Of a stretch of DNA of 64,000 nt, positions 2,832 to 37,285 are shown piece after piece (position 1 is the first letter of the stretch; each line of letters begins with the position of its first letter). The stretch is taken from the sequence record ON529852.1; one strand, 5' to 3'. The position numbers and the translations under genes are program-made. Under the pieces are notes generated by a model, which ran no database searches, was not told where the DNA came from, and worked only from the letters and a program-made list of their open reading frames with translations.

Positions 2832-3082
2832 CCGCCCCTTGCATCTATCTGACGGCCCCGGCCGAACTGCATGAGGCCAAGCGCTTCGGCGACGGCTGGC
2901 GCCAGGTGGTGCAGCCGGAACGCTTCCTGTGTGCTTGGGCCACCTATCACGAGGACGCCGTCGCGGCGTTGTCGAAGGCGCCGCCCTGGCTGGTCACCAA
3001 CGCGCTCGCCGGGCACCTGGTGCGCGCCGACAAGGATTGCCCGCGCTGTCCCTACTACAAGGCCGGCGATCCGGTCGAATAG
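2828..3082 (+). CDS. hypothetical protein with C-terminal CxxC
   Basis: ATGA overlap at 2828, MTAPCIYL...CPRCPYY. Confidence 0.65.
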   Translation: MTAPCIYLTAPAELHEAKRFGDGWRQVVQPERFLCAWATYHEDAVAALSKAPPWLVTNALAGHLVRADKDCPRCPYYKAGDPVE

Positions 3083-3175: not shown

Positions 3176-4414
3176 GTGAGCACCTTTGCTGTACCGATCC
3201 TCGCGATCGACGACGTCTACGATCACCCCAACGCTGATCGCCTCTCCATCATCCGCATTCGCGGCTACGAAGCCGTCGCCGGCAAGGCCGAGGACGGATC
3301 GCACCGCTTTGTCAAGGGGGAGCGCATCATCTACGTGCCCGAGGGCGCGGTGGTGCCGGCCGCGCACCTGAAGGAGCGCGGCTACTGGAACGAGGCCAAG
3401 GACATCGGCCTGCTGGCGGGAACCAAGGGCAACCGCGTCAAGGCGATCACCCTGCGTGGCGTGCTGAGCCAGGGCCTGGTGTGGAAGACCGAACCCCTCG
3501 TCGGTGCAAAGGTCAAGGATCGCGCGACCGGAGACATCGTCGCCCAGGTGAATCCGGAGAAGCCTGCGCTGGCGGTCGCCACGGCCGAAGACGGCTCGAA
3601 AACGGCGGTGATGGTTGATTTCGGCGACGACGTCGCCGACTTCTTCGGCATCACCAAATACGACCCGCCGATCCCTCCGGGCCTGGACGGCGACGTCTTT
3701 GGCCTGTTCGAGGCGATGTTCAACTACGACATCGAGAACGCCAAGGCCTTCCCGAACCTGTTCACCGAGGACGACGTCGTCACGGTGACGGAGAAGCTGC
3801 ACGGCACCTTCTGCCGGATGACCTACATGCCCGGCATCGAGCCGCGCGACGATTTGTTCGGCGACGGCCGCGTGGCGATCACCTCCAAGGGCCTGGGCGC
3901 CGACGGCCTGGTGTTCAAGAACACCGCCTTCAATCGTCAGAAGAACGTCTACGTGCGCAATATGCTGCCGCTGGTGGACCACTTCGTCTCGGCCTGCAAC
4001 CAGGACGCCAAGGGCCTGACCGTCCACCTGATGGGCGAGGTTTACGGCGCTGGCGTGCAGGACCTCAAGTACGGCCGAACCGAGGACCAGGGCTTCGCCG
4101 CCTTCGACGTCTGGATCGAGAAGTCGGGCTTCCTGGCCGAGGTCGAGAAGGATTACGCCTGCATCGCCTTCGGGGTGGAGCGAGTGCCGGTCTTGTTCGA
4201 GGGCTTCTACGACAAGGCGCTGATCGAGGACTTCGCCAAGGGCGACACCACGATCGACGGCGCCGAGAACATCCGCGAAGGCGTCGTCGTGACCCTGACC
4301 GGAGAGCAGGACAAACGCCCCGACGGCAACGGCCTGGGCGGCACCCTGCGCCCGATCTGCAAGGTCGTGTCGGAAGCCTACCTGACCCGCAAGGGCGGGA
4401 CCGAACTGCAATAG
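3176..4414 (+). CDS. RNA ligase (DRB0094/Rnl2-like family)
   Basis: N-terminal HPNADRL, YVPEGAVVP and RVKAITLRGVLSQG; nucleotidyltransferase motifs TEKLHG, GEVYG, FDV, REGVVV. Confidence 0.85.
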   Translation: MSTFAVPILAIDDVYDHPNADRLSIIRIRGYEAVAGKAEDGSHRFVKGERIIYVPEGAVVPAAHLKERGYWNEAKDIGLLAGTKGNRVKAITLRGVLSQGLVWKTEPLVGAKVKDRATGDIVAQVNPEKPALAVATAEDGSKTAVMVDFGDDVADFFGITKYDPPIPPGLDGDVFGLFEAMFNYDIENAKAFPNLFTEDDVVTVTEKLHGTFCRMTYMPGIEPRDDLFGDGRVAITSKGLGADGLVFKNTAFNRQKNVYVRNMLPLVDHFVSACNQDAKGLTVHLMGEVYGAGVQDLKYGRTEDQGFAAFDVWIEKSGFLAEVEKDYACIAFGVERVPVLFEGFYDKALIEDFAKGDTTIDGAENIREGVVVTLTGEQDKRPDGNGLGGTLRPICKVVSEAYLTRKGGTELQ

Positions 4415-4777: not shown

Positions 4778-6712
4778 GTGGCCCACATCGACTATGAGAA
4801 CAACCTGTTTCTCGGACGCGGCACGTTCGAGGAGCGGGAAATCTTCCGTGATGTCCTGGGCAAGTTCCAGGGCTTCACCTTTTCCAAGGAATACGGCTGC
4901 TGGACGACCGGCGACGTCGTGATGGCCCAGGCGGTCAAGGGCGTGGTCTGGACCGACCGCGCCATGGCGCGTCTGCGCACCCTGCTGGAAGCCGCCAAGA
5001 TCAGCGAAGAACTGTCGTGGCGATCGGATACGACCTATGTGCCGCCGTCGCCGCCGGGGTTGAGTTACCTCCCCTACCAACGCGCCGGAATCGAATACGC
5101 ACTGATGCGCAAGGACACGCTGATCGCCGATCAGCCTGGTCTGGGCAAGACCATCCAGGCGATCGGCGTCTTGAACGCTGACGAGACCATCAACAGCGCC
5201 CTGTTCATCGTGCCGGCCTCGCTGAAGATCAACTGGCATCGCGAGATCGACAAGTGGATGCTGCCCAACCTGACCTTCGGCATCGCCGAGGCCAAGCGGA
5301 TCGACAAGGAGTTGATCGGTTACGCCAAGGCCTATGAATATGTCGAGGACGGGGTCTACAAGACCGGGGCCAAGGCGGGCCAGCCCAAGTTCAAGAAGGT
5401 CGAGGTCCAGGGCAAGCCCAAGTATCGCAACGTCGAGACGTCCGACTACTGGCCCGACACCGACGTCGTCATCATCAACTACGACATCCTGGAGCGCTTC
5501 GCGGTCCAGATCAAGGAACGCAACTGGGACTACCTGGTCTGCGACGAATGCCATGCGCTGAAGAGCGCCGCGACCGGGCGCACCCTGTTCGTGCTCGGCG
5601 GCAAGCAGGAGTTCAACAAGGCCCAGCGCGACAAGCGCAAGGCCGAGGGCCTGTCGTCGCGGCCGATCTGGCATCGCGCCATCGACGCCAACCGCCGCGT
5701 CTTCCTGTCCGGCACGCCGATGATGTCGCGGCCGGTGGAGTTGTGGCCCATCGCTCACGCCTTCAACCCCTCCGACCTGGGCCGCGACTATGTCGACTTC
5801 GCCTACCGCTACTGCGCCGCCTGGACGACCGCCTACGGTCTGGACGTTTCGGGCGCCTCGAACCTGGAGGAGTTGGGCCAGAAGGCCCGCGCCAGCTTCA
5901 TGGTGCGCCGGCTGAAACGCGAGGTGCTACCGGAACTGCCGCCCAAGCGCCGCATCGTCGTCACCCTGGACAGCCCTGAAATCCGCGAACTGGTCGCCCG
6001 TGAAGACGAACTGGCCCAGGCGTTGCGCCTCTACGAGAACGTCACCCTCAACAAGGGCGTGGTGGTCGACGAGATCAACCACGGCATCCAGATCGTCAAC
6101 CACATGACGCGGATGGGGATGACGGACGAGTTCGATCCCGACAATCCGAACTGGCGCTCGCTCGACCTCGACTACGCCGCCTCGGTCGCCGGTCTGGAGC
6201 CGCCGGCCGTCGCCATCCTGTTCGAGGAAATGGCGAAGGTGCGCCGCGATCTCGGCCTCGCCAAGCTGAGCGCGCTCAAGCCGTGGATGGATGATTTCCT
6301 GGAGGGTGGCGAGAAGCTGCTGATGTTCGCCTACCACTCCGACGTGGTCAAGGCGCTGGCCCTGGCGGCCGAGAAGTGGAACCCGGCGGTGATCTGGGGC
6401 GGCACGCCCCTGCACAAGCGCCAAGGCGAGGTCGACAAGCTGCAAGGCGACGAAAGCTGCCGCCTGTTTATCGGCAACATCCAGGCGGCCGGCGTCGGCT
6501 TCACCATGACGCGCGCCCATGACGTCGCCTTCGCCGAGGGCGACTGGGTGCCCAGCCAGATTGAGCAGTGTGAGGACCGCGCCTGCCGCATCGGCCAGAC
6601 GGCCGAGAAGATCAACAGCTACTTCCTGGTCGCCAACGGCTCGCTCGATTCCCGCATCGCCCAGGCCGCCAAGGCCAAGGAAGACAACATCAACCTGGCG
6701 ATGGGGGCGTGA
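4778..6712 (+). CDS. SNF2/HARP-like helicase
   Basis: ADQPGLGKT (Walker A), DECH, LSGTP, GVGFTMTRA, QCEDRACRIGQ. Confidence 0.9.
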   Translation: MAHIDYENNLFLGRGTFEEREIFRDVLGKFQGFTFSKEYGCWTTGDVVMAQAVKGVVWTDRAMARLRTLLEAAKISEELSWRSDTTYVPPSPPGLSYLPYQRAGIEYALMRKDTLIADQPGLGKTIQAIGVLNADETINSALFIVPASLKINWHREIDKWMLPNLTFGIAEAKRIDKELIGYAKAYEYVEDGVYKTGAKAGQPKFKKVEVQGKPKYRNVETSDYWPDTDVVIINYDILERFAVQIKERNWDYLVCDECHALKSAATGRTLFVLGGKQEFNKAQRDKRKAEGLSSRPIWHRAIDANRRVFLSGTPMMSRPVELWPIAHAFNPSDLGRDYVDFAYRYCAAWTTAYGLDVSGASNLEELGQKARASFMVRRLKREVLPELPPKRRIVVTLDSPEIRELVAREDELAQALRLYENVTLNKGVVVDEINHGIQIVNHMTRMGMTDEFDPDNPNWRSLDLDYAASVAGLEPPAVAILFEEMAKVRRDLGLAKLSALKPWMDDFLEGGEKLLMFAYHSDVVKALALAAEKWNPAVIWGGTPLHKRQGEVDKLQGDESCRLFIGNIQAAGVGFTMTRAHDVAFAEGDWVPSQIEQCEDRACRIGQTAEKINSYFLVANGSLDSRIAQAAKAKEDNINLAMGA

Positions 6713-7212: not shown

Positions 7213-7542
7213 ATGCATACCCGACAACCCGAAGAGTTCGCCCGCATTCTCGACGAGGCGGCCGAGCATATCGCACGCCAACCGATCCATCCCGGTCAAT
7301 CCCTGCCGGGGTTATGGAACCTGGACGACGATTCTCACGAGCCGGCGCGCCTGATCGGCGTCATCGTGGCCTCGGCCCTGGCCCAAGTCTGCAAGACCGG
7401 CGATTGCGACCTGCAAGAGGCGCTCGCCAGCTATGCGGCGGTCTCCCACAACATCCCCCTGGTCGCCAAGGGCGGTCCGGACGTGATCGCGGCGCAGAAC
7501 CTGCGCGACGCCGCCCGGACGCTGCGTGAAGCGCGTCACTGA
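7213..7542 (+). CDS. hypothetical protein
   Basis: 109-aa ORF, AGGA SD-like sequence, followed by a terminator. Confidence 0.7.
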   Translation: MHTRQPEEFARILDEAAEHIARQPIHPGQSLPGLWNLDDDSHEPARLIGVIVASALAQVCKTGDCDLQEALASYAAVSHNIPLVAKGGPDVIAAQNLRDAARTLREARH

Positions 7543-7545
7543 CAC

Positions 7546-7580
7546 AAAAAAGACCCGTCGCTGTCGAGCGCCGGGTCTTT
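7546..7580. terminator. bidirectional rho-independent terminator
   Basis: AAAAAAGACCCG...CGGGTCTTT between convergent units. Confidence 0.7.
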
Positions 7581-7585
7581 GATGT

Positions 7586-7672
7586 TGGAGGTGCGACCTG
7601 GACTCGAACCAGGATGAGGGTAATCCCTACGGCTTATGAGGCCGCTGCCTGTTCCAGCCGCGCCACCGCACC
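7586..7672 (-). tRNA. tRNA with CAT anticodon (Met or Ile2), long variable arm, encoded CCA
   Basis: GGTGCGG/TCGCACC acceptor, GCGGC-CTCATAA-GCCGT anticodon arm, variable hairpin AGGG-ATTA-CCCT, CCTGGTTCGAGTCCAGG T-arm, U73. Confidence 0.8.
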
Positions 7673-7684
7673 AAAAAGAAATCC

Positions 7685-7756
7685 AGGCGTGCTTCCGTTA
7701 CACTAAACCGGCGAGGGTCATGACCCTCGGACGCCGGCTGCGGGATCGAACCGCTC
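7685..7756 (-). ncRNA. circularly permuted tRNA-like module (T-arm, closed acceptor stem, D-arm)
   Basis: GCGGTTCGATCCCGC, then AGCCGGCG...CGCCGGTT, then AGTGTAACGGAAGCAC; closely similar to the tRNA-like domain at 12874-12930. Confidence 0.5.
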
Positions 7757-7903
7757 TACCTGTGTATCCGCTGTCCGCGCCACGCCAGCGTCCGCCGCTA
7801 AGCGGGCGCCTGGAGAGTCGAACTCCGACAACGAAGATTCGGACCAGCCCGTCGGCCGGTCCACGAACGCCGCGACGCCGAGGGAGGCGCCGGGGCGATC
7901 GAA

Positions 7904-7981
7904 TGGGAGCGGGGACACGATTCGAACGTGCGATCTCTTGGTTATGAGCCAAGAATGTTGACCGGGCTACACTACCCCGCG
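7904..7981 (-). tRNA. tRNA-Met(CAT), initiator-like
   Basis: CGCGGGG 5' end with C1:U72 mismatch, CTTGG-CTCATAA-CCAAG anticodon arm, TTCGAAT T-loop, CCA. Confidence 0.85.
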
Positions 7982-7991
7982 ACTCTTAGGC

Positions 7992-8293
7992 GCCAGTTCC
8001 GACGGCAGTGCGCCGGCTGGTACTCAACGGACTCCTCCGCCGACCCTGCGCCAGGAACCATGGCGGACGCAGGATCAAGACGAAGGCGTTGCTTTACACC
8101 CACTTCGGACGCCGGACCCGTCGGGCCGGCGAAACTTTGACCAGGGGTTGTGGGACGAGTAATCCCGCCCTCTGGCCCGGCGGACTACTAGGCCTGCCCT
8201 TGCCTGGGCTCCCCCAGGCGTCCGGCACGACTTTTGGTCAACCAACCTTTACTCACGAAGACGGACGTAGCACCCGGCGTGGATCGGAACTGG
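7992..8293 (-). ncRNA. candidate ~300-nt structured RNA of unknown family
   Basis: 10-bp closing helix CCAGTTCCGA/TCGGAACTGG plus nested helices; lies between tmRNA and tRNA-Met; no credible ORF. Confidence 0.5.
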
Positions 8294-8374
8294 TAGGCCC
8301 CTCTCCTGAACGGGCCGCCGTGCTCTGGCGGTGGTCCGTCGTCATCGCCGCCGGCGTCCGCCTGCGAGAGTAAA

Positions 8375-8711
8375 GTGGGGAACTTTCTGTTCCAAGGCCC
8401 GGCAAGCCGGGGTTCCCCATACCCGTGGACGCCCTTAGGCGGCCAGGAGGACTCGTTCGCCAGCGGCGAAGTTGTCGTTGTGTGCTTCGACAGTTGTCAA
8501 AGTTGGATCGTGAGCGGCCGAAACCGCCATGCAGACCCTAGCACTCGCCATTCAATCCCGTCACCAACGTCAATCGATACTGGTCGGCCCCTCAAACCGC
8601 GCCCGTCTCCCATCATAGGAGGGGGATTGGTGGAGCCGACGGGATTCGCACCCGTGTCTTGTCCGTCTGTTTCGTTCTCTCTGCTTCGGTCCGAAGACCT
8701 CCGCGCGACGA
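8375..8711 (-). ncRNA. ssrA: two-piece (circularly permuted) tmRNA, alphaproteobacterial type
   Basis: Acceptor piece ends ACGGGTGCGAATCCCGTCGGCTCCACCA (CCA end at 8628); 36-nt intervening segment; coding piece starts GGGGCCGA at 8591 (G3.U70 Ala identity); tag ORF 8491-8435 reads VEAHNDNFAAGERVLLAA*. The 8375 end is approximate. Confidence 0.9.
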
Positions 8712-8717
8712 AATGCC

Positions 8718-8758
8718 TGTATACAGAGTCCGTTTCTGAGTGTCAAGCATTCCGTCAA
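8718..8758 (-). promoter_or_regulatory. sigma70-type promoter of the tmRNA gene
   Basis: TTGACA (8746-8741), 17 nt, TATACA (8723-8718); upstream TTGACGG-N5 repeat. Confidence 0.75.
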
Positions 8759-8766
8759 AGATTTCT

Positions 8767-8853
8767 TGGAGGGACGGGTGAGAATCGAACTCACGCCAGG
8801 CTTTCGCCAGGAGGATTTGCAGTCCCCCGCCTTACCACTCGGTCCACCGTCCC
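8767..8853 (-). tRNA. tRNA-Cys(GCA) with long variable arm
   Basis: GGGACGG/CCGTCCC acceptor, CTGCAAA anticodon loop, variable hairpin GGC-GAAA-GCC, GTGAGTTCGATTCTCAC T-arm, U73, CCA. Confidence 0.85.
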
Positions 8854-8862
8854 CTGGTGTCG

Positions 8863-8999
8863 GTCTGGAAAGGGGAACCCGCCCGTGCCCGCCGCAGGTC
8901 CCGTGGTCGGTCCCGGCGGCGTCAGGGTTTCACGGCCCCAGGTCGACCCTCTCCCGTGATAGAGGGCGATACGCTGCGGACGGGCTCGCCTTTCCAGAC
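8863..8999. ncRNA. candidate ~137-nt long-hairpin RNA (6S-like architecture?)
   Basis: 11-bp terminal helix GTCTGGAAAGG/CCTTTCCAGAC, further stems and a central bubble with side hairpin CCCTCT/AGAGGG. Confidence 0.5.
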
Positions 9000-9058
9000 G
9001 AAAAGGACCGCCCTGTTGCACTCCCCGGAGGGATCGTGTGACGGCCCGTGACCCTCGC

Positions 9059-9087
9059 CTTATAGCGGAATCGGCCGGGGCCGGCAA
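9059..9087 (-). promoter_or_regulatory. sigma70-type promoter heading the tRNA/ncRNA cluster
   Basis: TTGCCG, 17 nt, TATAAG on the minus strand. Confidence 0.55.
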
Positions 9088-9232
9088 GGTCGAAAACGCG
9101 CGGATGTCAAAAATCTCGACACTTCGTCAGGATTCTGCCGCTAAAATGTCGATTGAACTTTATGTTAAGACGTGCTAAGGTCTTCATGTAGTCGTCAGCA
9201 ACAGACTGCGTCCTGCCAACGGAGACATACAG

Positions 9233-9970
9233 ATGCTGCACAGTGTTCACGGCACGGTTCCGAAGCTTAAACGATGGTGCGGGCCTTCCGCCATCTCCAT
9301 CATTACCGGCCAGCCCTATCACCACGCTCTGGCGTTGCTTAAGGACGTCAAGGCCGCCAGACGCACCTACCGTGTCACGAAGGCGCCGATCGTCAAAGGC
9401 GCGTCATCGCCTAGCGTGCGTACCGTTCTGAAGAGCCTGGGTTATCTGACGACGCAGCGGGTGACGCCGGCAGGGATCACCGTCGCGGCCTGGCTGGCGG
9501 CGCGGCGCCCCGCCGACCAGTTCACCACCTTCCTGATCGTGGCGGCCAACCACTGGATAGTGGTGCGCGGCGAAGAGGCGTGCTGCGGCATTCTCGGGAC
9601 GCCGACGCCGATCGGTCAGATGAAGTTTCGACGCGGCGTCGTCACGGAATGCTGGGTCGTCACGCCGTCCGCGCAGGGCGTGGCCCCGATCGTGACCGAG
9701 GCGCGCAAGCCGCCCGCGCGGGCGTCGTCCTCCTGGGACCGCAGCGAGGCCCGCGACCGCCGCGCCTTCGTCAAGCTGGCGCGCCAGCACGCCTTCACCT
9801 ACGACATCGTCCGGGATTGCGACACGATCCGCTACATGGAGATCGCGCCCTGCGCCATCTTCCCCAAGGGGCTGGACACCCTGCACCATGACTGGGCGGA
9901 AACCCTGGACCGGGTCCGGCATTGCCTCGATCACCCCGAGGACGCCGCCTCGGGCAGCTACGGCCGCTGA
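9233..9970 (+). CDS. hypothetical protein, N-terminal C39/papain-like Cys-His motif
   Basis: WCGPSAISIITG and NHWIVV segments; followed by a terminator. Confidence 0.6.
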   Translation: MLHSVHGTVPKLKRWCGPSAISIITGQPYHHALALLKDVKAARRTYRVTKAPIVKGASSPSVRTVLKSLGYLTTQRVTPAGITVAAWLAARRPADQFTTFLIVAANHWIVVRGEEACCGILGTPTPIGQMKFRRGVVTECWVVTPSAQGVAPIVTEARKPPARASSSWDRSEARDRRAFVKLARQHAFTYDIVRDCDTIRYMEIAPCAIFPKGLDTLHHDWAETLDRVRHCLDHPEDAASGSYGR

Positions 9971-9977
9971 ACGCAAG

Positions 9978-10010
9978 AGCCCCGACCGAGCGATCGGTCG
10001 GGGCTTTTTC
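9978..10010 (+). terminator. rho-independent terminator (possibly bidirectional)
   Basis: GCCCCGACCGA-GCGA-TCGGTCGGGGC followed by TTTTT. Confidence 0.8.
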
Positions 10011-10035
10011 TCGCGCCATCGTTTGTATCTCGGCC

Positions 10036-10952
10036 GGCGCAGCGTCAGAAGGGTGTGTCGCTAGACCTCCGTCGCGGCGCCAGGGCACTGGGGCTCCCTA
10101 GCACAATCCTCACCTGAACGTGGCTTTCCTCCCCAAGGGGCTGAAGGTGGCGGTGTCCAGGCGACCCTGCGGGGCTCACACGACAAGGCCTCTTCTCAAT
10201 GCCAGGCATAGAAGTAGGCAGAGAGCATAGGTTCTTCCTACCCTCGTCATTGTCGTGGTCCGATTTCCGTCTATCACAGCCTCTGGCTGCCGTCACGCCT
10301 GGTTCCCATTTCTAGGACGGCGTTCCCCTCAGAAGACGGGTCCTGGTGGACCGCGTGCGGCTCTTCAGCGCCTGACGGAACTCGACGACGTGGTAGCCGG
10401 CCGTCTGAACAAGCGTCCCCAAGCGCTCCCAGGGACATGCCGTAGGAGTGTGGCAGGGTCCGCCCCACGCTGTGTCAGGATATACGACAATGAAGAGGAG
10501 GGGTCAATACCGCCTCTGGCGGCCGTCACGCCTAATCGTTCGTCTCGGGCGGCGTTCCCGTCAGGCCTGATTGTCCCCGGCCGAGGTTTGTTCGGGGGAG
10601 CGGTGCGGTCAATCACCCCGACTCACGTTCTCTCGTAACCCGACAGTACGGGCTTAAGCGCGCACGAGCGCTGCAAGGCAGTCACGCGGTGGTCGACTTG
10701 GTGAGGTCATCAAGCCCAGTCGCGCAATCCCACCCTGTATGACGGGATTCACGGCTATCGTCAAGGGGAAACGGGCGCTCTCTCCCGGTCACGCCTCGTC
10801 CTGATGTCTCAGCCGGCGTTCGCTTCAGACAGTGCGGCAGTCTCGGGGCCGTCCCACTCTCCCGCTGTCGTCGGGCCTGTTCCCAGAGGAAGGTCTACCC
10901 CAGGGCAGTCTGCTCCAGAGGCCAGGTCAGGGCGAACCCTGTGTGCTGCGCC
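10036..10952 (-). ncRNA. candidate ~917-nt large structured ncRNA (GOLLD/ROOL-class size and context)
   Basis: Interval between two terminators with no convincing gene; 8-bp end-to-end helix GGCGCAGC/GCTGCGCC; second long-range helix 10889-10897 with 10062-10070; three copies of an internal motif. Confidence 0.65.
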
Positions 10953-11003
10953 TAAGGACCTTCAGCAAGATTGAAGCCTACCAGAACAAACCGAAGCGGG
11001 CAA

Positions 11004-11036
11004 AGAAAAACGGCCCCGATCCGAAGATCGGGGCCG
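11004..11036 (-). terminator. rho-independent terminator of the TROVE gene
   Basis: CGGCCCCGATC-TTCG-GATCGGGGCCG followed by TTTTTCTTT on the minus strand. Confidence 0.8.
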
Positions 11037-11094
11037 CATCGTTCTTTACGCGGCAGCGTAATTCCGCGAACGGATTACGAATACCCGTATTGGA

Positions 11095-12483
11095 TCAGCC
11101 GCCGACGAGGCCGTCGTCGAACTCCATCGCCTCGACCTCACGGATATAGCGCAGGACGCTCTCCGAGAAGCCGTCGATGTGGACCCATCCGTTGCCGTAG
11201 CCGATGCCGTTTTCATAGCTGGCGACGTTGATCATGTAGGCCTTGCCGGCCTTGGGCGCCGGCAGTCGCCCGCCACCCATCCCGCTGCTCAGCGTTCCCG
11301 ACGCCTGTTCGTCGGTGATGACGATCAGGCGGTCGCAGGCGAACTGACGGTTCACCACGTCCACGGCCTGGGCCAGGGCGGTGCCGTTGTGCGGCTGCGA
11401 ACGGATCACCGCATCGACCCCCGCCATGCCCTTGCGGGCCGGGACCTCGACCAGACCGTTGGAGAAGGTCACGACGCGCACGTCGCCCGGCAGGATCGCC
11501 GCCAGCGTCGCCGCCGCATCCATCCGGGTCAGGTCCGACTTTCCGGACAGTTTTTGCCGCATGGAGTAGGAGACGTCGACCATGACCACGGTCGAACCCT
11601 TCAAGGGTTCGGCCTGATCAATCGTCGCCACGAGGGCGTCGTCCAGCGCCCGCTCGAACGAGGGCGCATAACGCGCCGCCGCCGTGAAGCGGAAGGGCAG
11701 GACGCGGTCCGCGCCCTTGCGCGCGCGGATCGCAGCATTGACCAGATCGCGGTCGACGCCGGCCTGCTCCATGTTGCGCAGGTTGCGCAGCAGGGCGAGG
11801 TAGCCCAGTTTGCCGTCGGCCAGCAGACGCGTGAACGTCGCCTTCTTGTCGGCGCCGCCCGACAGGGCGACTTCCCAGGTGTCGGGCGCCGTCAGTTCAT
11901 TGTCGACCAGCTTCTTGTAGAGGACCTCGCGGTCGTCGTTCGCCGGCTTGGCGTGCGCCAGAAACAGAACGTCGCGCAGGCGCACGGACTTGGCCCGGTC
12001 GTACTTGGCGATCTGATAGGCGTCGAAGTTGCCGAAGGCCAGCGACAGCCCCTTCTTCACCTGAGCGGACAGCGGCGCCTTCTTGCCGTCGGCGCGCACC
12101 GGGTTGAGCGCCCAGTAGAGAGCCAGGAACTCGCTCAGTTCATCGGCGCGCTGGATGACGCGGGCGATGGTCAGCGACACCAGGGCCGAGCCGGACCCGC
12201 GTTGGGCCAGAACGACGAGCAGCAGAAGGGGGACGTGACGCAGCTTGGCGTCCTCACGCGCTTCAATCGCGATCTGGGCGAGGGTCTCGACCGGAACTTC
12301 CTTGGCGAGGCTCTGGATACGGTCGGCGATCGACACGCCGCTCTCGTAGAAATTGTCTTCCCACAGCAGGCAGGACATGACCGACCGGCGCAGGGCCTGG
12401 GTCTTGGTCATCCGATCGGCCGGTGCGCCTTCATGGGTGCGCGCGGTGGTCGTCTTGGGCTTTGCGTTGATCGACGCCATAAT
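11095..12483 (-). CDS. rsr: Ro60/TROVE-domain RNA-binding protein with C-terminal vWA domain
   Basis: Start probably ATG 12483 (MASINAKP, GGAGG SD). THEGAPA, LRRSVMSCLLWEDNFYE, KYDR, TWE, YLALLRNLRN, RVLPFRF; vWA MIDAS DVSYSM...T...VITDEQ. Confidence 0.92.
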   Translation of the reverse strand: MMASINAKPKTTTARTHEGAPADRMTKTQALRRSVMSCLLWEDNFYESGVSIADRIQSLAKEVPVETLAQIAIEAREDAKLRHVPLLLLVVLAQRGSGSALVSLTIARVIQRADELSEFLALYWALNPVRADGKKAPLSAQVKKGLSLAFGNFDAYQIAKYDRAKSVRLRDVLFLAHAKPANDDREVLYKKLVDNELTAPDTWEVALSGGADKKATFTRLLADGKLGYLALLRNLRNMEQAGVDRDLVNAAIRARKGADRVLPFRFTAAARYAPSFERALDDALVATIDQAEPLKGSTVVMVDVSYSMRQKLSGKSDLTRMDAAATLAAILPGDVRVVTFSNGLVEVPARKGMAGVDAVIRSQPHNGTALAQAVDVVNRQFACDRLIVITDEQASGTLSSGMGGGRLPAPKAGKAYMINVASYENGIGYGNGWVHIDGFSESVLRYIREVEAMEFDDGLVGG

Positions 12484-12508
12484 GGGTCCCCTCCTCGTCT
12501 GGTCAAGC

Positions 12509-12675
12509 GACCAAGAGGTCGGGGAGGAACAAGCACGAGCCCGGTTCATCCGGTGCGTCTACCACTTCCGCCACCTGCACCAGAGATGCAGGCCAGGACT
12601 TGAACCTGGATACCCTTGACGGGCGCCGGCTCCAGCGAAGTATAGGCTCGTTACGCCATCCCCGACCTCTTGGTC
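12509..12675 (-). ncRNA. Y RNA, YrlA-like unit 1
   Basis: 17-bp terminal helix; TGGCGT/GTTCC internal motif; permuted tRNA domain: CCAGGTTCAAGTCCTGG T-arm, loop-closed TGCA acceptor-like stem, GTGGCGGAAGTGGTAGACGCAC D-arm. Confidence 0.8.
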
Positions 12676-32849: not shown

Positions 32850-33626
32850 TCACTCCACCTGACCCGGCCAGACACGGTCCGCCAGCCGCAGCAGGGCGCC
32901 GATGACCAGCTTCTTGTCCTTACCGTTGACGAAGGGGCTCATCGTCTCAGGCCAGCGCGGCGGCAGGCCCAGGAAGGGCAGGGTGCGCTCGGCCGCCTCG
33001 AACTCCGAGGCGGCGAAGGCGGCGACCTGCTGAAGACCGACGGCGTAGGAATGCAGGCCGTACTGCTTCGCGTTGCCGCCGTCGTGGTAGCCCATGCCCA
33101 GGCGGATTTTCTCGATCTCGCTGTCGTAGGCCATCCAGCAGAACCGGCCGTCGGGCAGGTCGAGGTGCTGGGTGTCCCAGTCCAGCGGATGGCCGAAGGC
33201 GTCGATGCGGCAGCGGTCGACGGCCTGGGAGAAGGGCTCCAGGCGGCCGATCGCCTTGATGGTGGAGACCAGAGGCATGAAGCGGCCCGCCGCCAGTTCC
33301 AGGCACGGGGTCTGGTCCAGCAGGGCGCGGTATTCCGCCACGGTTTGCCCGGCGCTCGACAGCGGATGGCGCTTGCCCTCGATCTGTTCGCGCAGCAGCA
33401 GGCCGTCGATCGGATCACGCGCCGCCAGCCATTCCACAAAGGCCGAGACGTGATACTCGTGCACCTGAGGCCCCAGAATGTGGGCGCGCTGGAGTTCGTT
33501 GACCGATTCCATGCCAAAGCCGATGTGCAGGCTGTTGTTCTCGTCCTGGTGCAGGGCGTAGAGGAACAGCCGACTGGCGCCGGTGGCCTTCAGCGGCGTG
33601 CGTTCATAGGCGTTGAGGAGGCTCAC
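32850..33626 (-). CDS. hypothetical protein
   Basis: GTG start at 33626 overlapping the upstream TGA; 258 aa. Confidence 0.7.
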   Translation of the reverse strand: MSLLNAYERTPLKATGASRLFLYALHQDENNSLHIGFGMESVNELQRAHILGPQVHEYHVSAFVEWLAARDPIDGLLLREQIEGKRHPLSSAGQTVAEYRALLDQTPCLELAAGRFMPLVSTIKAIGRLEPFSQAVDRCRIDAFGHPLDWDTQHLDLPDGRFCWMAYDSEIEKIRLGMGYHDGGNAKQYGLHSYAVGLQQVAAFAASEFEAAERTLPFLGLPPRWPETMSPFVNGKDKKLVIGALLRLADRVWPGQVE

Positions 33627-35335
33627 AGGCGCCACTTCGCTCCCTGCATGGTGATGATCTGGCGCTGGCCGTTGTGCAGGGTCACGACGTGGCTGTGCGA
33701 CCACGACGAGAGGCCCTTGTTGTAGCCCATGTCCAGCTTGGAGGTGGTGCCGGAGACGAAGGCCCCGTCGATGATCTGACACGAATGGGTGTGCCCGGTG
33801 GTCGACTTGGCGCCGGCGCGGGTGAACTGCCGGGGATTGCCGCGCGCGCCATTGGCGCCCAGGTGCCCGTGCATGCCCTTTTCGATGTCCATCACCTGGA
33901 AGGACTCGTCCTCGCGCAGGAAGCGCACGCCTTCGCAGGCGATGTCGTCGAAATAGTCCGTCAGGACATATTCGAACACCGAGAAGTCGCCGTCATGTTC
34001 GCGGATCGCCTGGTAGGCGCGCCGCTGGCAGGCCAGGAAGAACTCGGCGTTGCGCGGATCGTGGCGATAGTCGGCTTCCTTGAGCCAGCGCTTCAGCGCC
34101 AGGTCATGATTGGACTCCACCACGACCGTCTTGCAGAAATCCCGTCGCGTGGATTCGATGAAGGACGCCACCTCGCGCAGTTCCGTCTCGACGGAGTCGG
34201 CGCCGGCCACGAACAGGGCGAACATGTGGTGGGGATCGCGCAGATTGTGGTGGTTGCGCGCCTGGAAGTCGCAGACGTCGTGATAGAACTGGTACGACGG
34301 CCGCAGCGCGTCCAGGATCGGCATCGGATCGCTCTCGCCCGAGGTCGCCCAGCGCCGGCCGGACCCGCGCCCCTTGGCGTCAAGCGGGTAGAAGCCGAAG
34401 CAGGACTTCGCCACGATCGGGTCGATCTGGGCGACATGGAGGTCGCCCCAGTTGATCGCCGCCACGCGGTGACGGTGGGTGATCAGGGGCGTGTTGCCGC
34501 GCGCGGACTTGTCCGCGCGCGTCTGCACCCGGATGTCCAGGTCCATGAAGGAGCCGTCCGGCTCGGCGATCAGGTGGCGGCAGAAGAACTCGCCCTGGTC
34601 GTTCATCTCGACCAGCAAGGCCGCGACTTCGTGGTGGAAGGCCGCCTTGATGCCGGCCTTCTTCTTGACGTAGTTGGGCAGGGTGATCGAGCCGGTCGTC
34701 ATGTTCTGCTTGGCCGGGGCGTGCTTCATCGTCGGGACCGACTGAAGCTGAACCTTGGCGTGCGGGAAGATGCCCCAACGATGCTTGGTGTAGGTTTCGA
34801 ACCCGCTGAGCGGCGTGACCGCCGTCGGCAGGGTGTTCATCTCGCCGCAGTAGTCGATCTTGTCGCCCAGGCGGATGCGCTCGTTCGAGATGTAGGGCTC
34901 GATGCGGAAGTGGTAGTAGGGCTTCTGCTCGTTTCGACCCTTGTCATCGCCGTCTTTGGCGTGGCCCCGATACATCTTCTTGTTGTAGGTGTAGCCCGAG
35001 ATCATGATCTGGCACGGGCCGTCCTTGGACAGATGATCGCGATAGGCTTCCAGGTTGGTCAGGAAGTCCTCATGGATCGACGTCTCGGACTGGGCCGAAG
35101 TCAGGATGAAGCGCTGCACGGTGCCGGGCGCGACCACGATCTTCTTCGGCTCGACCGGCGGGATGTAGCTGAACGGGTCGCGGTGCACCTTGTGCAGGCG
35201 CAGTTGCAAGGTCGAGCGCGCCACGCCGTAGTGACGGCTGAACTGACGCTGGCCGCCCATCTCGGTGACGATGCGGTCGAGTTCCTCGGGCGAGACGGAG
35301 TCGAGGTCGAAGGACCCCTTGGCTTCAGCCGGCAA
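33623..35335 (-). CDS. HTH plus calcineurin-like metallophosphoesterase protein
   Basis: N-terminal FSRHYGVARSTLQ HTH; WGDLH, HD, SNHD, MHGH, GHTH metal motifs. Confidence 0.75.
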   Translation of the reverse strand: MPAEAKGSFDLDSVSPEELDRIVTEMGGQRQFSRHYGVARSTLQLRLHKVHRDPFSYIPPVEPKKIVVAPGTVQRFILTSAQSETSIHEDFLTNLEAYRDHLSKDGPCQIMISGYTYNKKMYRGHAKDGDDKGRNEQKPYYHFRIEPYISNERIRLGDKIDYCGEMNTLPTAVTPLSGFETYTKHRWGIFPHAKVQLQSVPTMKHAPAKQNMTTGSITLPNYVKKKAGIKAAFHHEVAALLVEMNDQGEFFCRHLIAEPDGSFMDLDIRVQTRADKSARGNTPLITHRHRVAAINWGDLHVAQIDPIVAKSCFGFYPLDAKGRGSGRRWATSGESDPMPILDALRPSYQFYHDVCDFQARNHHNLRDPHHMFALFVAGADSVETELREVASFIESTRRDFCKTVVVESNHDLALKRWLKEADYRHDPRNAEFFLACQRRAYQAIREHDGDFSVFEYVLTDYFDDIACEGVRFLREDESFQVMDIEKGMHGHLGANGARGNPRQFTRAGAKSTTGHTHSCQIIDGAFVSGTTSKLDMGYNKGLSSWSHSHVVTLHNGQRQIITMQGAKWRL

Positions 35336-36059
35336 AATACATCTCCGCCTTGGCGTGGGGGGCGGTCAGGGCCTTGCGCCAGTCCCAGACGTACCAGGCG
35401 TAGGAGAAGCGCGGGCTCTTGGACTCCTCGCCCTCCTTCTTCTCGACCCAGACCGGGCGGAAGCGCAGGGTGATCTTGGCGATGAAGGCGGGGTGATCGA
35501 TCAGGTGGGCGCGGCCCTTGGCCGTGTCCCACTCATGGCGCATCAGCATGGCGACATAGCCCTGCTCCGCCTCCATCAACTCCAGCGCCTTCTCGACCGC
35601 CAGAACGGCTTCCTTGCCGTAGGGTGGGTTGGTGATGATGCAGTCCGGACGGAAGCCCAGGGCCGCCTCGACCTCGGTCATGGAGATCGGACGGGGCGCT
35701 TCGTTTTTCGTGACTCCACCGTCCAGCGTCGCCTTGTCGATCGTGCGCTCCCAAGCCGCCACGGCGATCTCGTGGGCGTCGCCGTCGGCGTAGATGTTGA
35801 AGAAGTCCAGCATCGCCGTCGGGTCGAGGCCCTCGTAGCGATGGATGTCGCTGGTGGCTTCCAGCCGGCACAGCGGGCCGATCAATCGGGAAATGGCGCC
35901 GTTGCCCGCGAAGGGCTCCCAGAAGGCCATCTGCTCCAGGTCGTCCTCGACCACGGAGATGAAGGCTTCGGTCGCGCGGGCCGGGGTCGGGTAGAAGTCC
36001 AGGGCGTTGCGGGGATAGTTCGTACCCCCCAGCATGGAGGGGTCTTGACGCGTGGTCAT
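35325..36059 (-). CDS. amino (N6-A/N4-C) DNA methyltransferase-like protein
   Basis: DFYPTP, WEPFAGNG, SD, IITNPPY, RF...YAWYVW. Confidence 0.8.
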   Translation of the reverse strand: MTTRQDPSMLGGTNYPRNALDFYPTPARATEAFISVVEDDLEQMAFWEPFAGNGAISRLIGPLCRLEATSDIHRYEGLDPTAMLDFFNIYADGDAHEIAVAAWERTIDKATLDGGVTKNEAPRPISMTEVEAALGFRPDCIITNPPYGKEAVLAVEKALELMEAEQGYVAMLMRHEWDTAKGRAHLIDHPAFIAKITLRFRPVWVEKKEGEESKSPRFSYAWYVWDWRKALTAPHAKAEMYFAG

Positions 36060-36209
36060 TCAGCAGGCCGTTTTGATGGAGGGGATGCGCGGTCGGAGCG
36101 CTTGCGGCCTTCTTGGTCTCACGATTAACCACGAACGTCAAGATTTACGTCAATGGGAGTCAGGTGCGTTGACACACTTGCATCCGGATCGACCTTGGAT
36201 TATCGGTGA

Positions 36210-36615
36210 TGCTTCGAGAAGACGACGAGGATCGTCGAGCGTCTCCTGGCCGCGCACGGGTCAGGATCAACGCCGTCGTCTCAGGGAGACGCGGACCTAA
36301 GGCGATAGGGCTCCGCGTCAATGGGTGAAGTGAGGAACGGACGGCGCATCCGTGTTGGAGCCATAGTCCAGGTGGGCGATTCACTGCCTTACCCGGACCG
36401 AGTCGCGGTAATCGAATGCTGCCGCGTGACGTGACGCCGACCGACAGTAGAGGATGGCGTGACCTAAGGGGAGAGGCCCATGCAGGGCGGACCGCGTCGG
36501 ACGCGGCCGCCGACTAGCCGGAGGGGCTGCACACCCGATGGACAGGATCGCCCCGCCCGCGAAGAAGCGAATGGGGGATGACGCCGGCGCAGCCGAGACA
36601 GACGATGCGCACGAA
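36210..36615 (+). ncRNA. candidate ~400-nt structured RNA
   Basis: Helix-dense, no credible gene; helices GCGTCTCC/GGAGACGC and AGACGACG/CGTCGTCT; shares the ACGCCG...GGCGTGAC motif and 3' tail with the 10-kb RNA; ends are approximate. Confidence 0.5.
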
Positions 36616-36645
36616 AAAGGCCCCGATCGCAAGATCGGGGCCTTT
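36614..36645. terminator. bidirectional terminator between two convergent ncRNA candidates
   Basis: AAAAA-GGCCCCGATC-GCAA-GATCGGGGCC-TTT; same 10-bp stem as the terminator at 11011-11034. Confidence 0.8.
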
Positions 36646-37233
36646 GACGTCGTGGCGGGGTCCTCGGTTTTCATCGTCGCGGCCGGCGTGCCTTTCGCTA
36701 AACGATCCCGCATCTCTTCGCACCGGGCGGACCCGGACTACTTTACCGCCGGCCCCCATACGGTGAACCTCGAAGGCAGAGCCTCTAGCGCATCCTACCG
36801 GCGCCATAGCGGTGTGTGAGGAAGGGGTTCTCACCTCACGATCAGGGAAGTGGACGACCGGGGAAACGTCCCGCCGGCCCGATCGTCCGGGCATTGCGCC
36901 CTTGAAAGCGAAACGGCAGGAGGGGACTGGCCCGTCCTGCCGCTCTATGACCTGGGGAGTGGCGTACCTGTCCCGGCGGTCGGTGCGGTGGCGCATGGTC
37001 CGAAAGACCAGAGGAGCCGCGTGATCCGGGGTAACTCGAAGGTCCCGCGCCTCACCCGCTGCTGTTTATTCGCCCCGACATGCTGATCCGGGACTACTAG
37101 AACTGGTTGCCCCGTCGTTCCAGCCGGGGACTGCGTGTGGCCGTCGCCAATACCGCCTTGGTCCGTTCCAGGAGCCACCCTGCCTGAGCAGTCGCCAGCG
37201 AAGCCGATACTGAAAGCGCCTCACTGAGAAGAG
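36646..37233 (-). ncRNA. candidate ~590-nt structured RNA (ROOL-like size)
   Basis: Strong promoter upstream and terminator downstream; no credible gene; two AGUA/GAA loop-E hairpins; long-range helix 37195-37202 with 36694-36701. Confidence 0.6.
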
Positions 37234-37238
37234 GGCGC

Positions 37239-37279
37239 ACTATAAGCAGGGTTTCGACTTTTGTCAATAACTACGGCAG
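37239..37279 (-). promoter_or_regulatory. sigma70-type promoter with CTGCCGT-N5 element
   Basis: CTGCCGT-AGTTA-TTGACA, 17 nt, TATAGT. Confidence 0.75.
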
Positions 37280-37285
37280 AAAAAT

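Follow-up and report, generated by a model that had tools for sequence, protein, structure and literature searches.

A tandem array of a small, covarying RNA motif in Brevundimonas phage vB_BpoS-Kabachok and its recurrence in other phages

RESULTS

An unannotated kilobase holds a tandemly repeated motif

We analyzed a 64,000-nucleotide stretch (the window; sequence record ON529852.1) of Brevundimonas phage vB_BpoS-Kabachok, a jumbo phage of the Dolichocephalovirinae with a genome of 356 kb (window position 9980 corresponds to record position 195980). Beside its tRNA genes lies an unannotated region whose minus strand, from 9998 to 10969, is well supported as a tandem array of one small structured RNA motif. 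The array holds three intact copies of the motif, one relic fused to a terminator, and possibly one more decayed copy, with bodies of 160 to 215 nucleotides (nt) between the copies. An earlier interpretation made from the letters alone (the sequence-only reading) had taken positions 10036 to 10952 for a single giant structured RNA, with the repeats as a minor feature; the repeats are the actual finding. Of the claim as a whole, the noncoding character, the minus strand, and the repeats stood, while the single giant RNA did not.

As had been proposed, no credible gene lies between 10011 and 10969. The annotations of Kabachok and of four close relatives (Domovoi, Papperlapapp, Marchewka, and Bambus; 90 to 96% identical there) are blank over 10011 to 11003, and the internal open reading frames (ORFs) have no PHROG match. 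Coding is further excluded by scattered insertions and deletions (indels) of 1 to 2 nt in these relatives, which break any frame. The region is bounded on the left by a hairpin terminator (9975 to 10010) and on the right by the terminator of a gene for a TROVE/Ro60-like protein, and it forms part of the tRNA-linked RNA-gene cluster of the phage, both as described before.

The threefold repeat is the one part of the original observation that lies far beyond chance, because a regular expression for the motif gave three matches in the region and none in 100 shuffles. We built a covariance model, R1, only from 26 copies found in phiCbK-like phages, the three window copies among them. In the window, R1 recognized these three copies, all included in the model, on the minus strand with scores of 59 to 75 bits (E = 1e-14 to 1e-19); members in other phages, which are independent of the model, reached E values down to 1e-16. 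Copy c1 (10266 to 10336; 72.5 bits, E = 3e-18) has an ACGCC...GGCGU hairpin 2 and a GCAGCC-AGA-GGCUGU hairpin 1 with one G-U pair, and its covariation is discussed below. Copy c2 lies at 10499 to 10568 (74.6 bits, E = 8e-19). Copy c3 (10762 to 10832; 59.5 bits, E = 1e-14) carries a long-loop form of hairpin 1, CGGG-AGAGAGCG-CCCG. The decayed minus-strand copy c0 (9998 to 10052; 15.2 bits, E = 0.015) has kept its 5' half, CUGACGCUGCGCCGGCCGAGAU, with hairpin 1 replaced by the terminator hairpin. It aligns to the full c0 copy of CcrColossus and to the half-motif that precedes the terminator in phiCbK-like phages.

The motif forms two covarying hairpins on the minus strand

The motif is about 70 nt long, with two adjacent covarying hairpins within 60 to 70 nt. 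Read on the minus strand, it begins 5'-(CUGACG)CGA and continues with hairpin 2 (ACGCC-loop-GGCGU), the unpaired bases GAC-R, hairpin 1 (a covarying stem of 4 to 6 bp with the loop GAGAGA or C-AGA-G), and a final AC. The hairpin 2 loop is variable (9 to 40 nt) and begins with GG. Copies in phiCbK-like phages have GAC-G before hairpin 1, whose loop is AGA or AGAGAGYG. The bases after hairpin 1 are mostly A and then C (24 and 23 of 40, respectively).

Both hairpins covary, which bears out the proposal that a structured RNA is present. Across the 26 distinct copies, the stems of hairpin 1 include GGGAC/GUCCC, GCGGCC/GGCCGC, CAGCC/GGCUG, AUGGG/CCCAU, GCCCG/CGGGC, and others. Paired bases fill 91.6% of cells in hairpins 1 and 2, compared with 79% in shuffles, and the covariation score was reached by none of 500 shuffles. 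Hairpin 2 shows two independent compensatory changes (in the second Gurke copy and in copy L025_1109) and one G-U pair. A conserved upstream hairpin (P0) is unsupported, as a crude test found fewer hairpins than in a control window.

The strand can be read from the pairs. At pair 48-62 of hairpin 1, 11 copies have G-C, 9 have G-U, and 1 has A-U; on the plus strand, nine copies would have A-C mismatches. In the Caulobacter phages, a conserved hairpin of body 1 has GNRA loops (GAAA and GCGA) on the minus strand only. Because the G-U pairs and GNRA loops fit the minus strand only, the RNA strand is that of the tRNAs, the tmRNA, and the TROVE gene, in agreement with the sequence-only reading. RNAalifold on four close relatives could not assign a strand, since it gave similar counts on both.

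Several known elements were considered for the motif and set aside. Mapping hammerhead, hairpin, and hepatitis delta virus (HDV) ribozymes onto it by eye failed because neither their core sequences nor their helix order fit. A canonical promoter inside the motif, with CTGACG as the -35 box, would put the -10 box in the loop of hairpin 2; it was dropped because that loop varies from 9 to 40 nt and holds no conserved hexamer. The resemblance to an SP6 promoter (GTGACAC-N-GAGAG) was ruled out by the covariation of bases -5 to -1 with downstream bases and by the single copy at most loci.

The bodies between the copies are conserved

Conservation between Kabachok and Marchewka is uneven along the array: 95.7% identity in body 2, 93% in segment X, 91 to 94% in the motifs, 88% in body 3, and 83.5% over 10011 to 10265. 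By comparison, the third codon positions of the two flanking genes are 70 to 80% identical and the spacer at 10970 to 11003 is 56% identical. Purifying selection on the bodies is well supported, and they appear to be functional sequence because their identity exceeds that of the neighboring third codon positions and spacer and because they show local compensatory changes. Most simply, the bodies are small RNAs. Within one phage they are mutually unrelated.

All of these units lie on the minus strand. Body 1 (10053 to 10265), the least conserved, has 1-nt indels, and the 83.5% value for its stretch includes the c0 relic; its hairpin at about 10188 to 10219 shows two compensatory double changes, CG to UA and UA to GC (alignment columns 184 to 215). 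Body 2 (10337 to 10498), the most conserved segment of the locus, has a compensatory change in a hairpin at about 10423 to 10451 and a minus-strand folding z-score of -1.1. Body 3 (10569 to 10761) has net frame-shifting indels in relatives and is orthologous to Gurke body 1, which lies beside the terminator (local alignment z = 9). Segment X (10833 to 10969) is the 5'-most part of the array, and its conserved block stops sharply at 10969. It includes the possible decayed copy at about 10850 to 10905, where 10854 to 10878 forms the third copy of a repeat family with 68% identity; R1 gave no match to this possible copy.

Promoter-like sites directly follow hairpin 1 in two copies, each a match to consensus only and below the threshold of the promoter scan. 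The site after c2 (10507 to 10479, minus strand) reads TTGACC-N17-TATATC and its Marchewka counterpart TTGACT-N18-TATATC; the site after c3 (10764 to 10736, minus strand) reads TTGACG-N17-CATACA, with TTGACC-N17-CATATA in Marchewka.

Related arrays in phiCbK-like phages are modular

The sequence-only reading had suggested a BLAST comparison across related phages. It did find a conserved part, but outside the Kabachok group there were only matches of about 55 nt to the repeat, and a multiple alignment across genera likewise showed conservation of the ~70-nt repeat only. The matches fell in Gurke, Kikimora, CcrColossus, CcrPW, phiCbK, Karma, Magneto, Swift, Rogue, BL10, and others, always in a gap of about 800 nt beside the cluster of two tRNA-Met genes, tmRNA, and tRNA-Cys. 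With nhmmer, all phiCbK-like phages examined had one to seven copies per locus, with seven in the metagenomic locus L025 (IMGVR_UViG_3300033068_001629).

The locus can be described as a modular array: depending on the relative, the slots between copies are filled by tRNAs, small ORFs, or noncoding bodies. The motif lies 2 to 9 nt before a co-oriented tRNA-Cys in CcrColossus, CcrPW, and L025 and 9 nt before tRNA-Met in L025. Its distance to downstream ORFs that have a Shine-Dalgarno sequence and ATG is 10 to 45 nt, as seen in L025 (two cases), in locus L012, and at gp415 of CcrPW. The last unit, in the phiCbK-like phages and in Kabachok, ends in a half-motif fused to an intrinsic terminator. 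L025 also has a tRNA-like gene about 60 nt after a motif copy (about 2912 to 2997, plus strand), which ARAGORN did not call; it has a T-arm, GTGGGTTCGATCCCCAC, a 3' CCA, and a possible ACG anticodon.

CcrPW differs from CcrColossus by one extra cassette, gp415 (198 amino acids, no assigned function), with both junctions inside the motif at GGCGUGAC. This gain looks like recombination between motif copies, judging from the junctions. The cassette (CcrPW locus L035, 2109 to 3050, compared with CcrColossus locus L007, 3990 to 4062) is bounded by two chimeric motif copies, and the junctions fall within an 8- to 9-nt core, GGCGUGAC(G). In phiCbK, gp290 is annotated across the motif, and its only match is PHROG 13461, of unknown function. 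The literature on phiCbK genomics, CtrA control, and phiCbK RNA-seq does not mention the element.

The motif recurs in unrelated phages

We scanned IMG/VR with the pattern CGAACGCC N10-40 GGCGTGAC N5-9 AGAG and found at least 120 loci. The counts in this section hold among the matches listed. With chance coding-region matches removed, there were about 40 distinct versions with a hairpin 1 of 4 to 6 bp and a GAGAGA loop. R1 recognized 39 members from viral, metagenomic, metagenome-assembled genome (MAG), and isolate loci, and hairpin 1 covaries in those 39 (0 of 500 shuffles). Most loci of 10 to 15 kb had a single copy (77 loci, compared with two copies in 18). Tandem pairs 50 to 270 nt apart also occur outside the phiCbK-like phages (L041, 7449 to 7611; L220, 11150 to 11305; L261, 747 to 866; L160, 8555 to 8826). 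The isolated phages with the motif include Morganella phage IME1369_02, Providencia phage PSTRCR_117lys, Stenotrophomonas phage phiSHP3, Pseudomonas phage Itty13, and a Bradyrhizobium phage; a BLAST search of isolated phages with the commonest IMG/VR variant gave no match.

The motif shares the orientation of its neighbors, and these recur. Among 88 contexts, tRNAs lie near it on the same strand at 13 loci and on the opposite strand at 3. A tRNA 5' end follows the AGAG loop by 10 to 15 nt in seven motifs, and a tRNA 3' end precedes the motif by 1 to 8 nt in three cases (within 5 nt in 2 of the 88). The upstream gene is repeatedly that of the major capsid protein (SU10_MCP or Phage_cap_E), 14 to 86 nt away, and in one case that of the large terminase; in phiSHP3 and in IMG/VR loci the motif follows the capsid gene. 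In the HK97-like IME1369_02 it lies between late-regulator ORFs and a tR'-like terminator with a holin gene, and in Itty13 it heads the late operon, with a tRNA-like gene about 55 nt downstream. That tRNA-like gene (L273, about 2570 to 2680) has a long insertion.

A host origin was also considered and rejected. One exact-pattern scan of 185,579 genomes, one per bacterial species, gave few convincing copies, all of them on MAG contigs from Myxococcales and Terriglobales, and E. coli genomes had no match.

The motif, previously uncatalogued, belongs to no Rfam 15 family. Bulk lists of predicted viral structured RNAs (PMC10690425) may already contain it without a name. Seven diverse members had no Rfam family match at E ≤ 1, including to HDV. 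One likeness in setting is to theta ribozymes, minimal HDV-like RNAs that are small, conserved, widespread in viral metagenomes, and abut phage tRNA genes (PMC10879173). The motif, too, is a small conserved structured RNA that adjoins phage tRNAs and is widespread in viral metagenomes. Theta ribozymes lie at tRNA 3' ends and fold into the HDV nested double pseudoknot (PMC10879173), whereas the tight spacing of the motif is mostly to the tRNA 5' end. An HDV-like or theta ribozyme was ruled out because neither the window copies nor the seven diverse members matched an HDV model; nor can the motif hold the HDV helices P2 and P3, since hairpin 2 loops of 10 to 12 nt are too short. Theta-type placement, with the 5' end of the element within 5 nt on either side of a tRNA 3' end, was found in just 2 of the 88 contexts.

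A single giant RNA is largely refuted

According to the sequence-only reading, all of 10036 to 10952 would be one minus-strand RNA closed by a helix between its ends, either GOLLD- or ROOL-like or of a new class. We regard this as very improbable and largely refuted. In its favor, the region is noncoding, constrained, phage encoded, and beside tRNAs; the local hairpins with compensatory changes, few in number, would also fit. The helices that had been described do exist. The segments GGCGCAGC (10036 to 10043) and GCTGCGCC (10945 to 10952) are exact complements over 8 bp, and two further helices, 10062-10070/10889-10897 (8 of 9 pairs) and 10088-10093/10898-10903 (6 bp), are present and cross each other.

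It is their meaning that did not survive. The best duplex between the ends has an energy of -60 kcal/mol, with the exact 8-bp complement inside it, and is thus somewhat stronger than average. As background, about 1,500 pairs of segments with equal spacing, drawn from this GC-rich window, averaged -45 ± 8 on the plus strand and -43 ± 8.5 on the minus strand, and 3 to 4% of them matched -60. The equivalent ends in other genera are not clearly above background (-45 ± 8): Gurke (-31) and CcrColossus (-45 and -30) lie at or below it, and phiCbK and Rogue (-52 to -58) are just 1 to 1.5 standard deviations better. The crossing 6-bp helix at 10088-10093/10898-10903, which would make a pseudoknot, is not maintained in close relatives: a 1-nt deletion disrupts it in Marchewka and Bambus, and Domovoi has a T in place of a C, which leaves a mismatch on the minus strand.

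Nor is there support for one fold across the region. Compared with dinucleotide shuffles, its folding z-scores were +0.89 (plus) and -0.45 (minus), and among 11 subsegments on both strands only those that included the terminator gave a signal. Membership in a known large-RNA family failed as well. At the gathering score, Rfam 15 matched only tRNAs and tmRNA in the 64-kb window, and at E ≤ 10 on both strands of 9900 to 11150 it returned terminator-like partial alignments only, with no GOLLD, ROOL, Y_RNA, YrlA, or HDV or other ribozyme model. The locus shares with GOLLD and ROOL that it is phage encoded, noncoding, several hundred nucleotides long, and adjacent to tRNA genes. It differs in having neither a covariance-model match nor a conserved multihelix architecture; it is modular, with conservation confined to the repeated ~70-nt unit. 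The bodies are not homologous to each other and are swapped between phages, and tRNAs and ORFs break up the homologous arrays of relatives.

Genes and other features around the array

To the right of the array, on the minus strand, lies the gene for a TROVE/Ro60-like RNA-binding protein (11095 to 12549; Pfam TROVE, 8e-12, plus vWA) with its strong intrinsic terminator (11004 to 11037, minus strand; a 12-bp stem followed by TTTTTCTTT). Between that terminator and the array is a hypervariable spacer (10970 to 11003), the least conserved stretch of the locus at 56% identity to Marchewka, and the sigma54-like site that had been proposed as a promoter overlaps it.

To the left is a plus-strand ORF (9233 to 9970; 245 amino acids), inserted between tRNA-Cys and the array, and then the minus-strand RNA-gene cluster. 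The ORF product has no Pfam or PHROG match. Mismatch rates against Marchewka of 0.10, 0.09, and 0.30 by codon position indicate that the ORF evolves like a real gene. It fills the slot held in CcrPW by the unrelated, oppositely oriented gp415. Its hairpin terminator (9975 to 10010), a GC-rich inverted repeat of 15 nt with 93% complementarity and terminator-like partial Rfam alignments, probably also ends the minus-strand array; a homologous terminator follows the array in phiCbK, Magneto, Rogue, BL10, and Gurke.

The RNA-gene cluster (7586 to 8853, minus strand; ARAGORN and Rfam) consists of two tRNA-Met genes, a permuted tmRNA (8435 to 8690), and tRNA-Cys (8767 to 8853; 87 nt with a long extra arm), which lie 1.2 to 2.4 kb from the array on the same strand. 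In CcrColossus, CcrPW, and L025 the cluster adjoins motif copies directly. The stretch from 7586 to 9232 has long unannotated spacers (7673 to 7903, 7982 to 8434, and 8854 to 9232), and tRNA-Cys is immediately followed by what looks like another decayed motif copy. In phiCbK, Magneto, and BL10, weak partial motif matches adjoin tRNA-fMet. The orientation of tRNA-Cys varies: it is inverted relative to the array, and followed by the shared terminator, in phiCbK, Magneto, Rogue, and BL10 (L008, 2719 to 2807), and it has the opposite orientation in CcrColossus (L007, 3905 to 3991), CcrPW, and the Brevundimonas phages (window 8767 to 8853).

Elsewhere in the window, a diverged motif copy (36422 to 36488, plus strand; R1 E = 3e-4) ends directly at an ATG. 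It sits in about 1.2 kb without a credible ORF (36060 to 37285), divergent from a DNA-methylase-like ORF (35325 to 36059, minus strand) and a T5 A1-like ORF (33623 to 35335, minus strand). Because the motif array of the Caulobacter phages holds the same divergent position beside the methylase and A1 genes, this stretch and the array may be two halves of a locus that a rearrangement has separated. In those phages the methylase/A1 operon is preceded by a conserved promoter-like sequence, TTGAC...GTTAACCAT (L008, about 3515 to 3545; L007, about 4800 to 4830), and TTAACCAT resembles a CtrA half-site.

The cumulative GC skew of the window (1 to 64000) has its minimum at about 11 to 13 kb, beside the array, and rises steadily from 15 kb. 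The minimum may mark a replication origin or merely a switch in gene orientation. An origin with iterons was considered for the repeats on account of this minimum and dropped, since the stems covary and the repeats are about 230 to 260 nt apart.

DISCUSSION

We tentatively favor the idea that the motif would act in cis to mark boundaries in polycistronic phage RNA, as a punctuation element with a role in processing and end protection. The idea is favored because no other reading accounts at once for tRNA flanks, the 3' ends of capsid genes, ORF leaders, and the multicopy array. The motif would be cotranscribed with its neighbors and would fold at the junction of two units, whether tRNA, tmRNA, small ORF, capsid mRNA, or noncoding body. 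There it could direct the site of a cut, the choice of protected ends, or both, through a conserved host nuclease or its own chemistry. The strong conservation of the sequence in phages whose hosts are unrelated suggests either a universal host factor or self-cleavage. The Kabachok array would yield three or four minus-strand RNAs of about 200 to 270 nt, each bounded by the motif, and two of the units may have a sigma70-type promoter of their own just after it.

A number of observations count against such a boundary role. Minus-strand transcription and cleavage of the array are predictions, and the cut or protected ends are placed purely by position. A plain stabilizing hairpin would not need such conservation of sequence across hosts, and tRNAs are nearby in just 13 of the 88 family contexts among the matches listed. 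The bodies have no thermodynamic folding signal (z = -1.2 to +1.6). The invariance of the hairpin 2 stem in the IMG/VR set is circular, because the search pattern fixes that stem. Finally, about ten copies have a promoter-like TTGAC box after hairpin 1, which fits a terminator/promoter cassette at least as well.

Other explanations have to be weighed against a boundary element. One, which we consider unlikely, though not negligibly so, is that the motif would be a new RNA class that works without phage-specific proteins, either a self-cleaving ribozyme or an RNA that rides RNA polymerase. As a ribozyme, it would be a new small self-cleaving one that punctuates transcripts in late leaders, in the 5' flanks of tRNAs, and at the 3' ends of capsid mRNAs; as a class, it would occur in phages whose hosts span several bacterial phyla and would have multiplied into arrays in the phiCbK-like jumbo phages. 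This reading arises from the conserved unpaired bases (CGA, GAC-R, the GAGAGA loop, and the 3' AC) around covarying helices and from conservation that is independent of the host. A polymerase-binding role has a known model in the put RNA, which binds the zinc-binding domain of the RNA polymerase beta' subunit and suppresses termination. By analogy with HK022 putL and putR, the nascent motif might bind the elongating host polymerase and suppress pausing or termination, allowing read-through of the structured RNA-gene cluster and of terminators after capsid genes or in late leaders; we give this, too, only a modest chance. HK022 put is a cis-acting phage RNA of about 70 nt with two neighboring stem-loops, found in operon leaders near terminators (PMC9378689), and the motif is close to it in size and architecture, a resemblance in form only, with no sequence similarity to put shown. 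A conserved RNA polymerase surface would explain the conservation across hosts. The expected position between promoter and first terminators is true of IME1369_02, whose copy lies in the late leader directly upstream of the tR'-like terminator and holin gene, and plausible in Itty13, whose copy stands at the start of the late operon, but it is not evident after capsid genes or within the Kabachok array. Unlike put, the motif is multicopy in phiCbK-like phages, flanks tRNAs (with copies within a few nucleotides of tRNA 5' ends), and follows capsid genes rather than a promoter in phiSHP3 and IMG/VR loci; up to seven copies in one short operon would be unneeded for a processive modification of polymerase.

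The motif could instead act at the level of DNA, as a terminator-like stem-loop with a promoter that insulates small cassettes and offers homology for modular shuffling, in analogy with the PeSLs of T4-like phages; this is rather improbable. PeSLs (promoter-early stem-loops) are cassettes at the borders of small variable cassettes in plastic regions of T4-like genomes, with AT-rich sigma70 promoters and true terminators, in many copies within one phage lineage (PMC2839356, PMC4122927). Likewise, the motif is a short composite stem-loop repeated at the borders of small variable cassettes, with indel junctions of relatives inside it, as in the CcrPW gain relative to CcrColossus. In about ten copies a TTGAC box lies 2 to 12 nt beyond hairpin 1, and in Kabachok c2 and L025 it is followed 17 nt later by TATATC or CATATC. 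Yet the -10 hexamers of these boxes are weak, copies that abut tRNAs or ORFs lack the boxes and have no space for a promoter, and no site in 7400 to 11200 came out of the promoter scan. What follows hairpin 1 is AC and mixed sequence rather than a U-tract, and the terminator scan did not list the hairpin. In place of an internal canonical promoter, the motif has two covarying hairpins with conserved unpaired bases, and its G-U pairs and variable loop length point to RNA structure. It also recurs in unrelated phages, and shuffling cannot explain its conservation, since most other phages have a single copy per 10- to 15-kb locus.

The remaining candidate, that the units of the array would be noncoding RNAs bound by the neighboring TROVE/Ro60 protein, in analogy with Y RNAs, is very unlikely. 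Bacterial YrlA and YrlB are encoded beside rsr, and the array resembles them in lying immediately downstream of the TROVE gene on the same strand in seven Brevundimonas phages. But only in the Brevundimonas phages are the two adjacent: the TROVE gene lies about 24 kb from the array in CcrColossus and CcrPW, and phiCbK, Rogue, Magneto, and BL10 have the array without the gene. Most other phages with the motif have capsid, terminase, or tRNA neighbors, and no Y_RNA or YrlA model matched at E ≤ 10.

If the motif is indeed a boundary element, it would explain a kilobase that has stood blank in jumbo-phage annotations. A compact, covarying RNA would then mark boundaries that are heavily used by phages, namely, capsid gene ends, tRNA flanks, and late-operon leaders, and could serve as a marker for annotating the borders of phage transcription units. 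At about 70 nt, it would also be a cheap test object for how phages cut, protect, or read through polycistronic RNAs, in a system that phiCbK and Caulobacter crescentus make genetically tractable.

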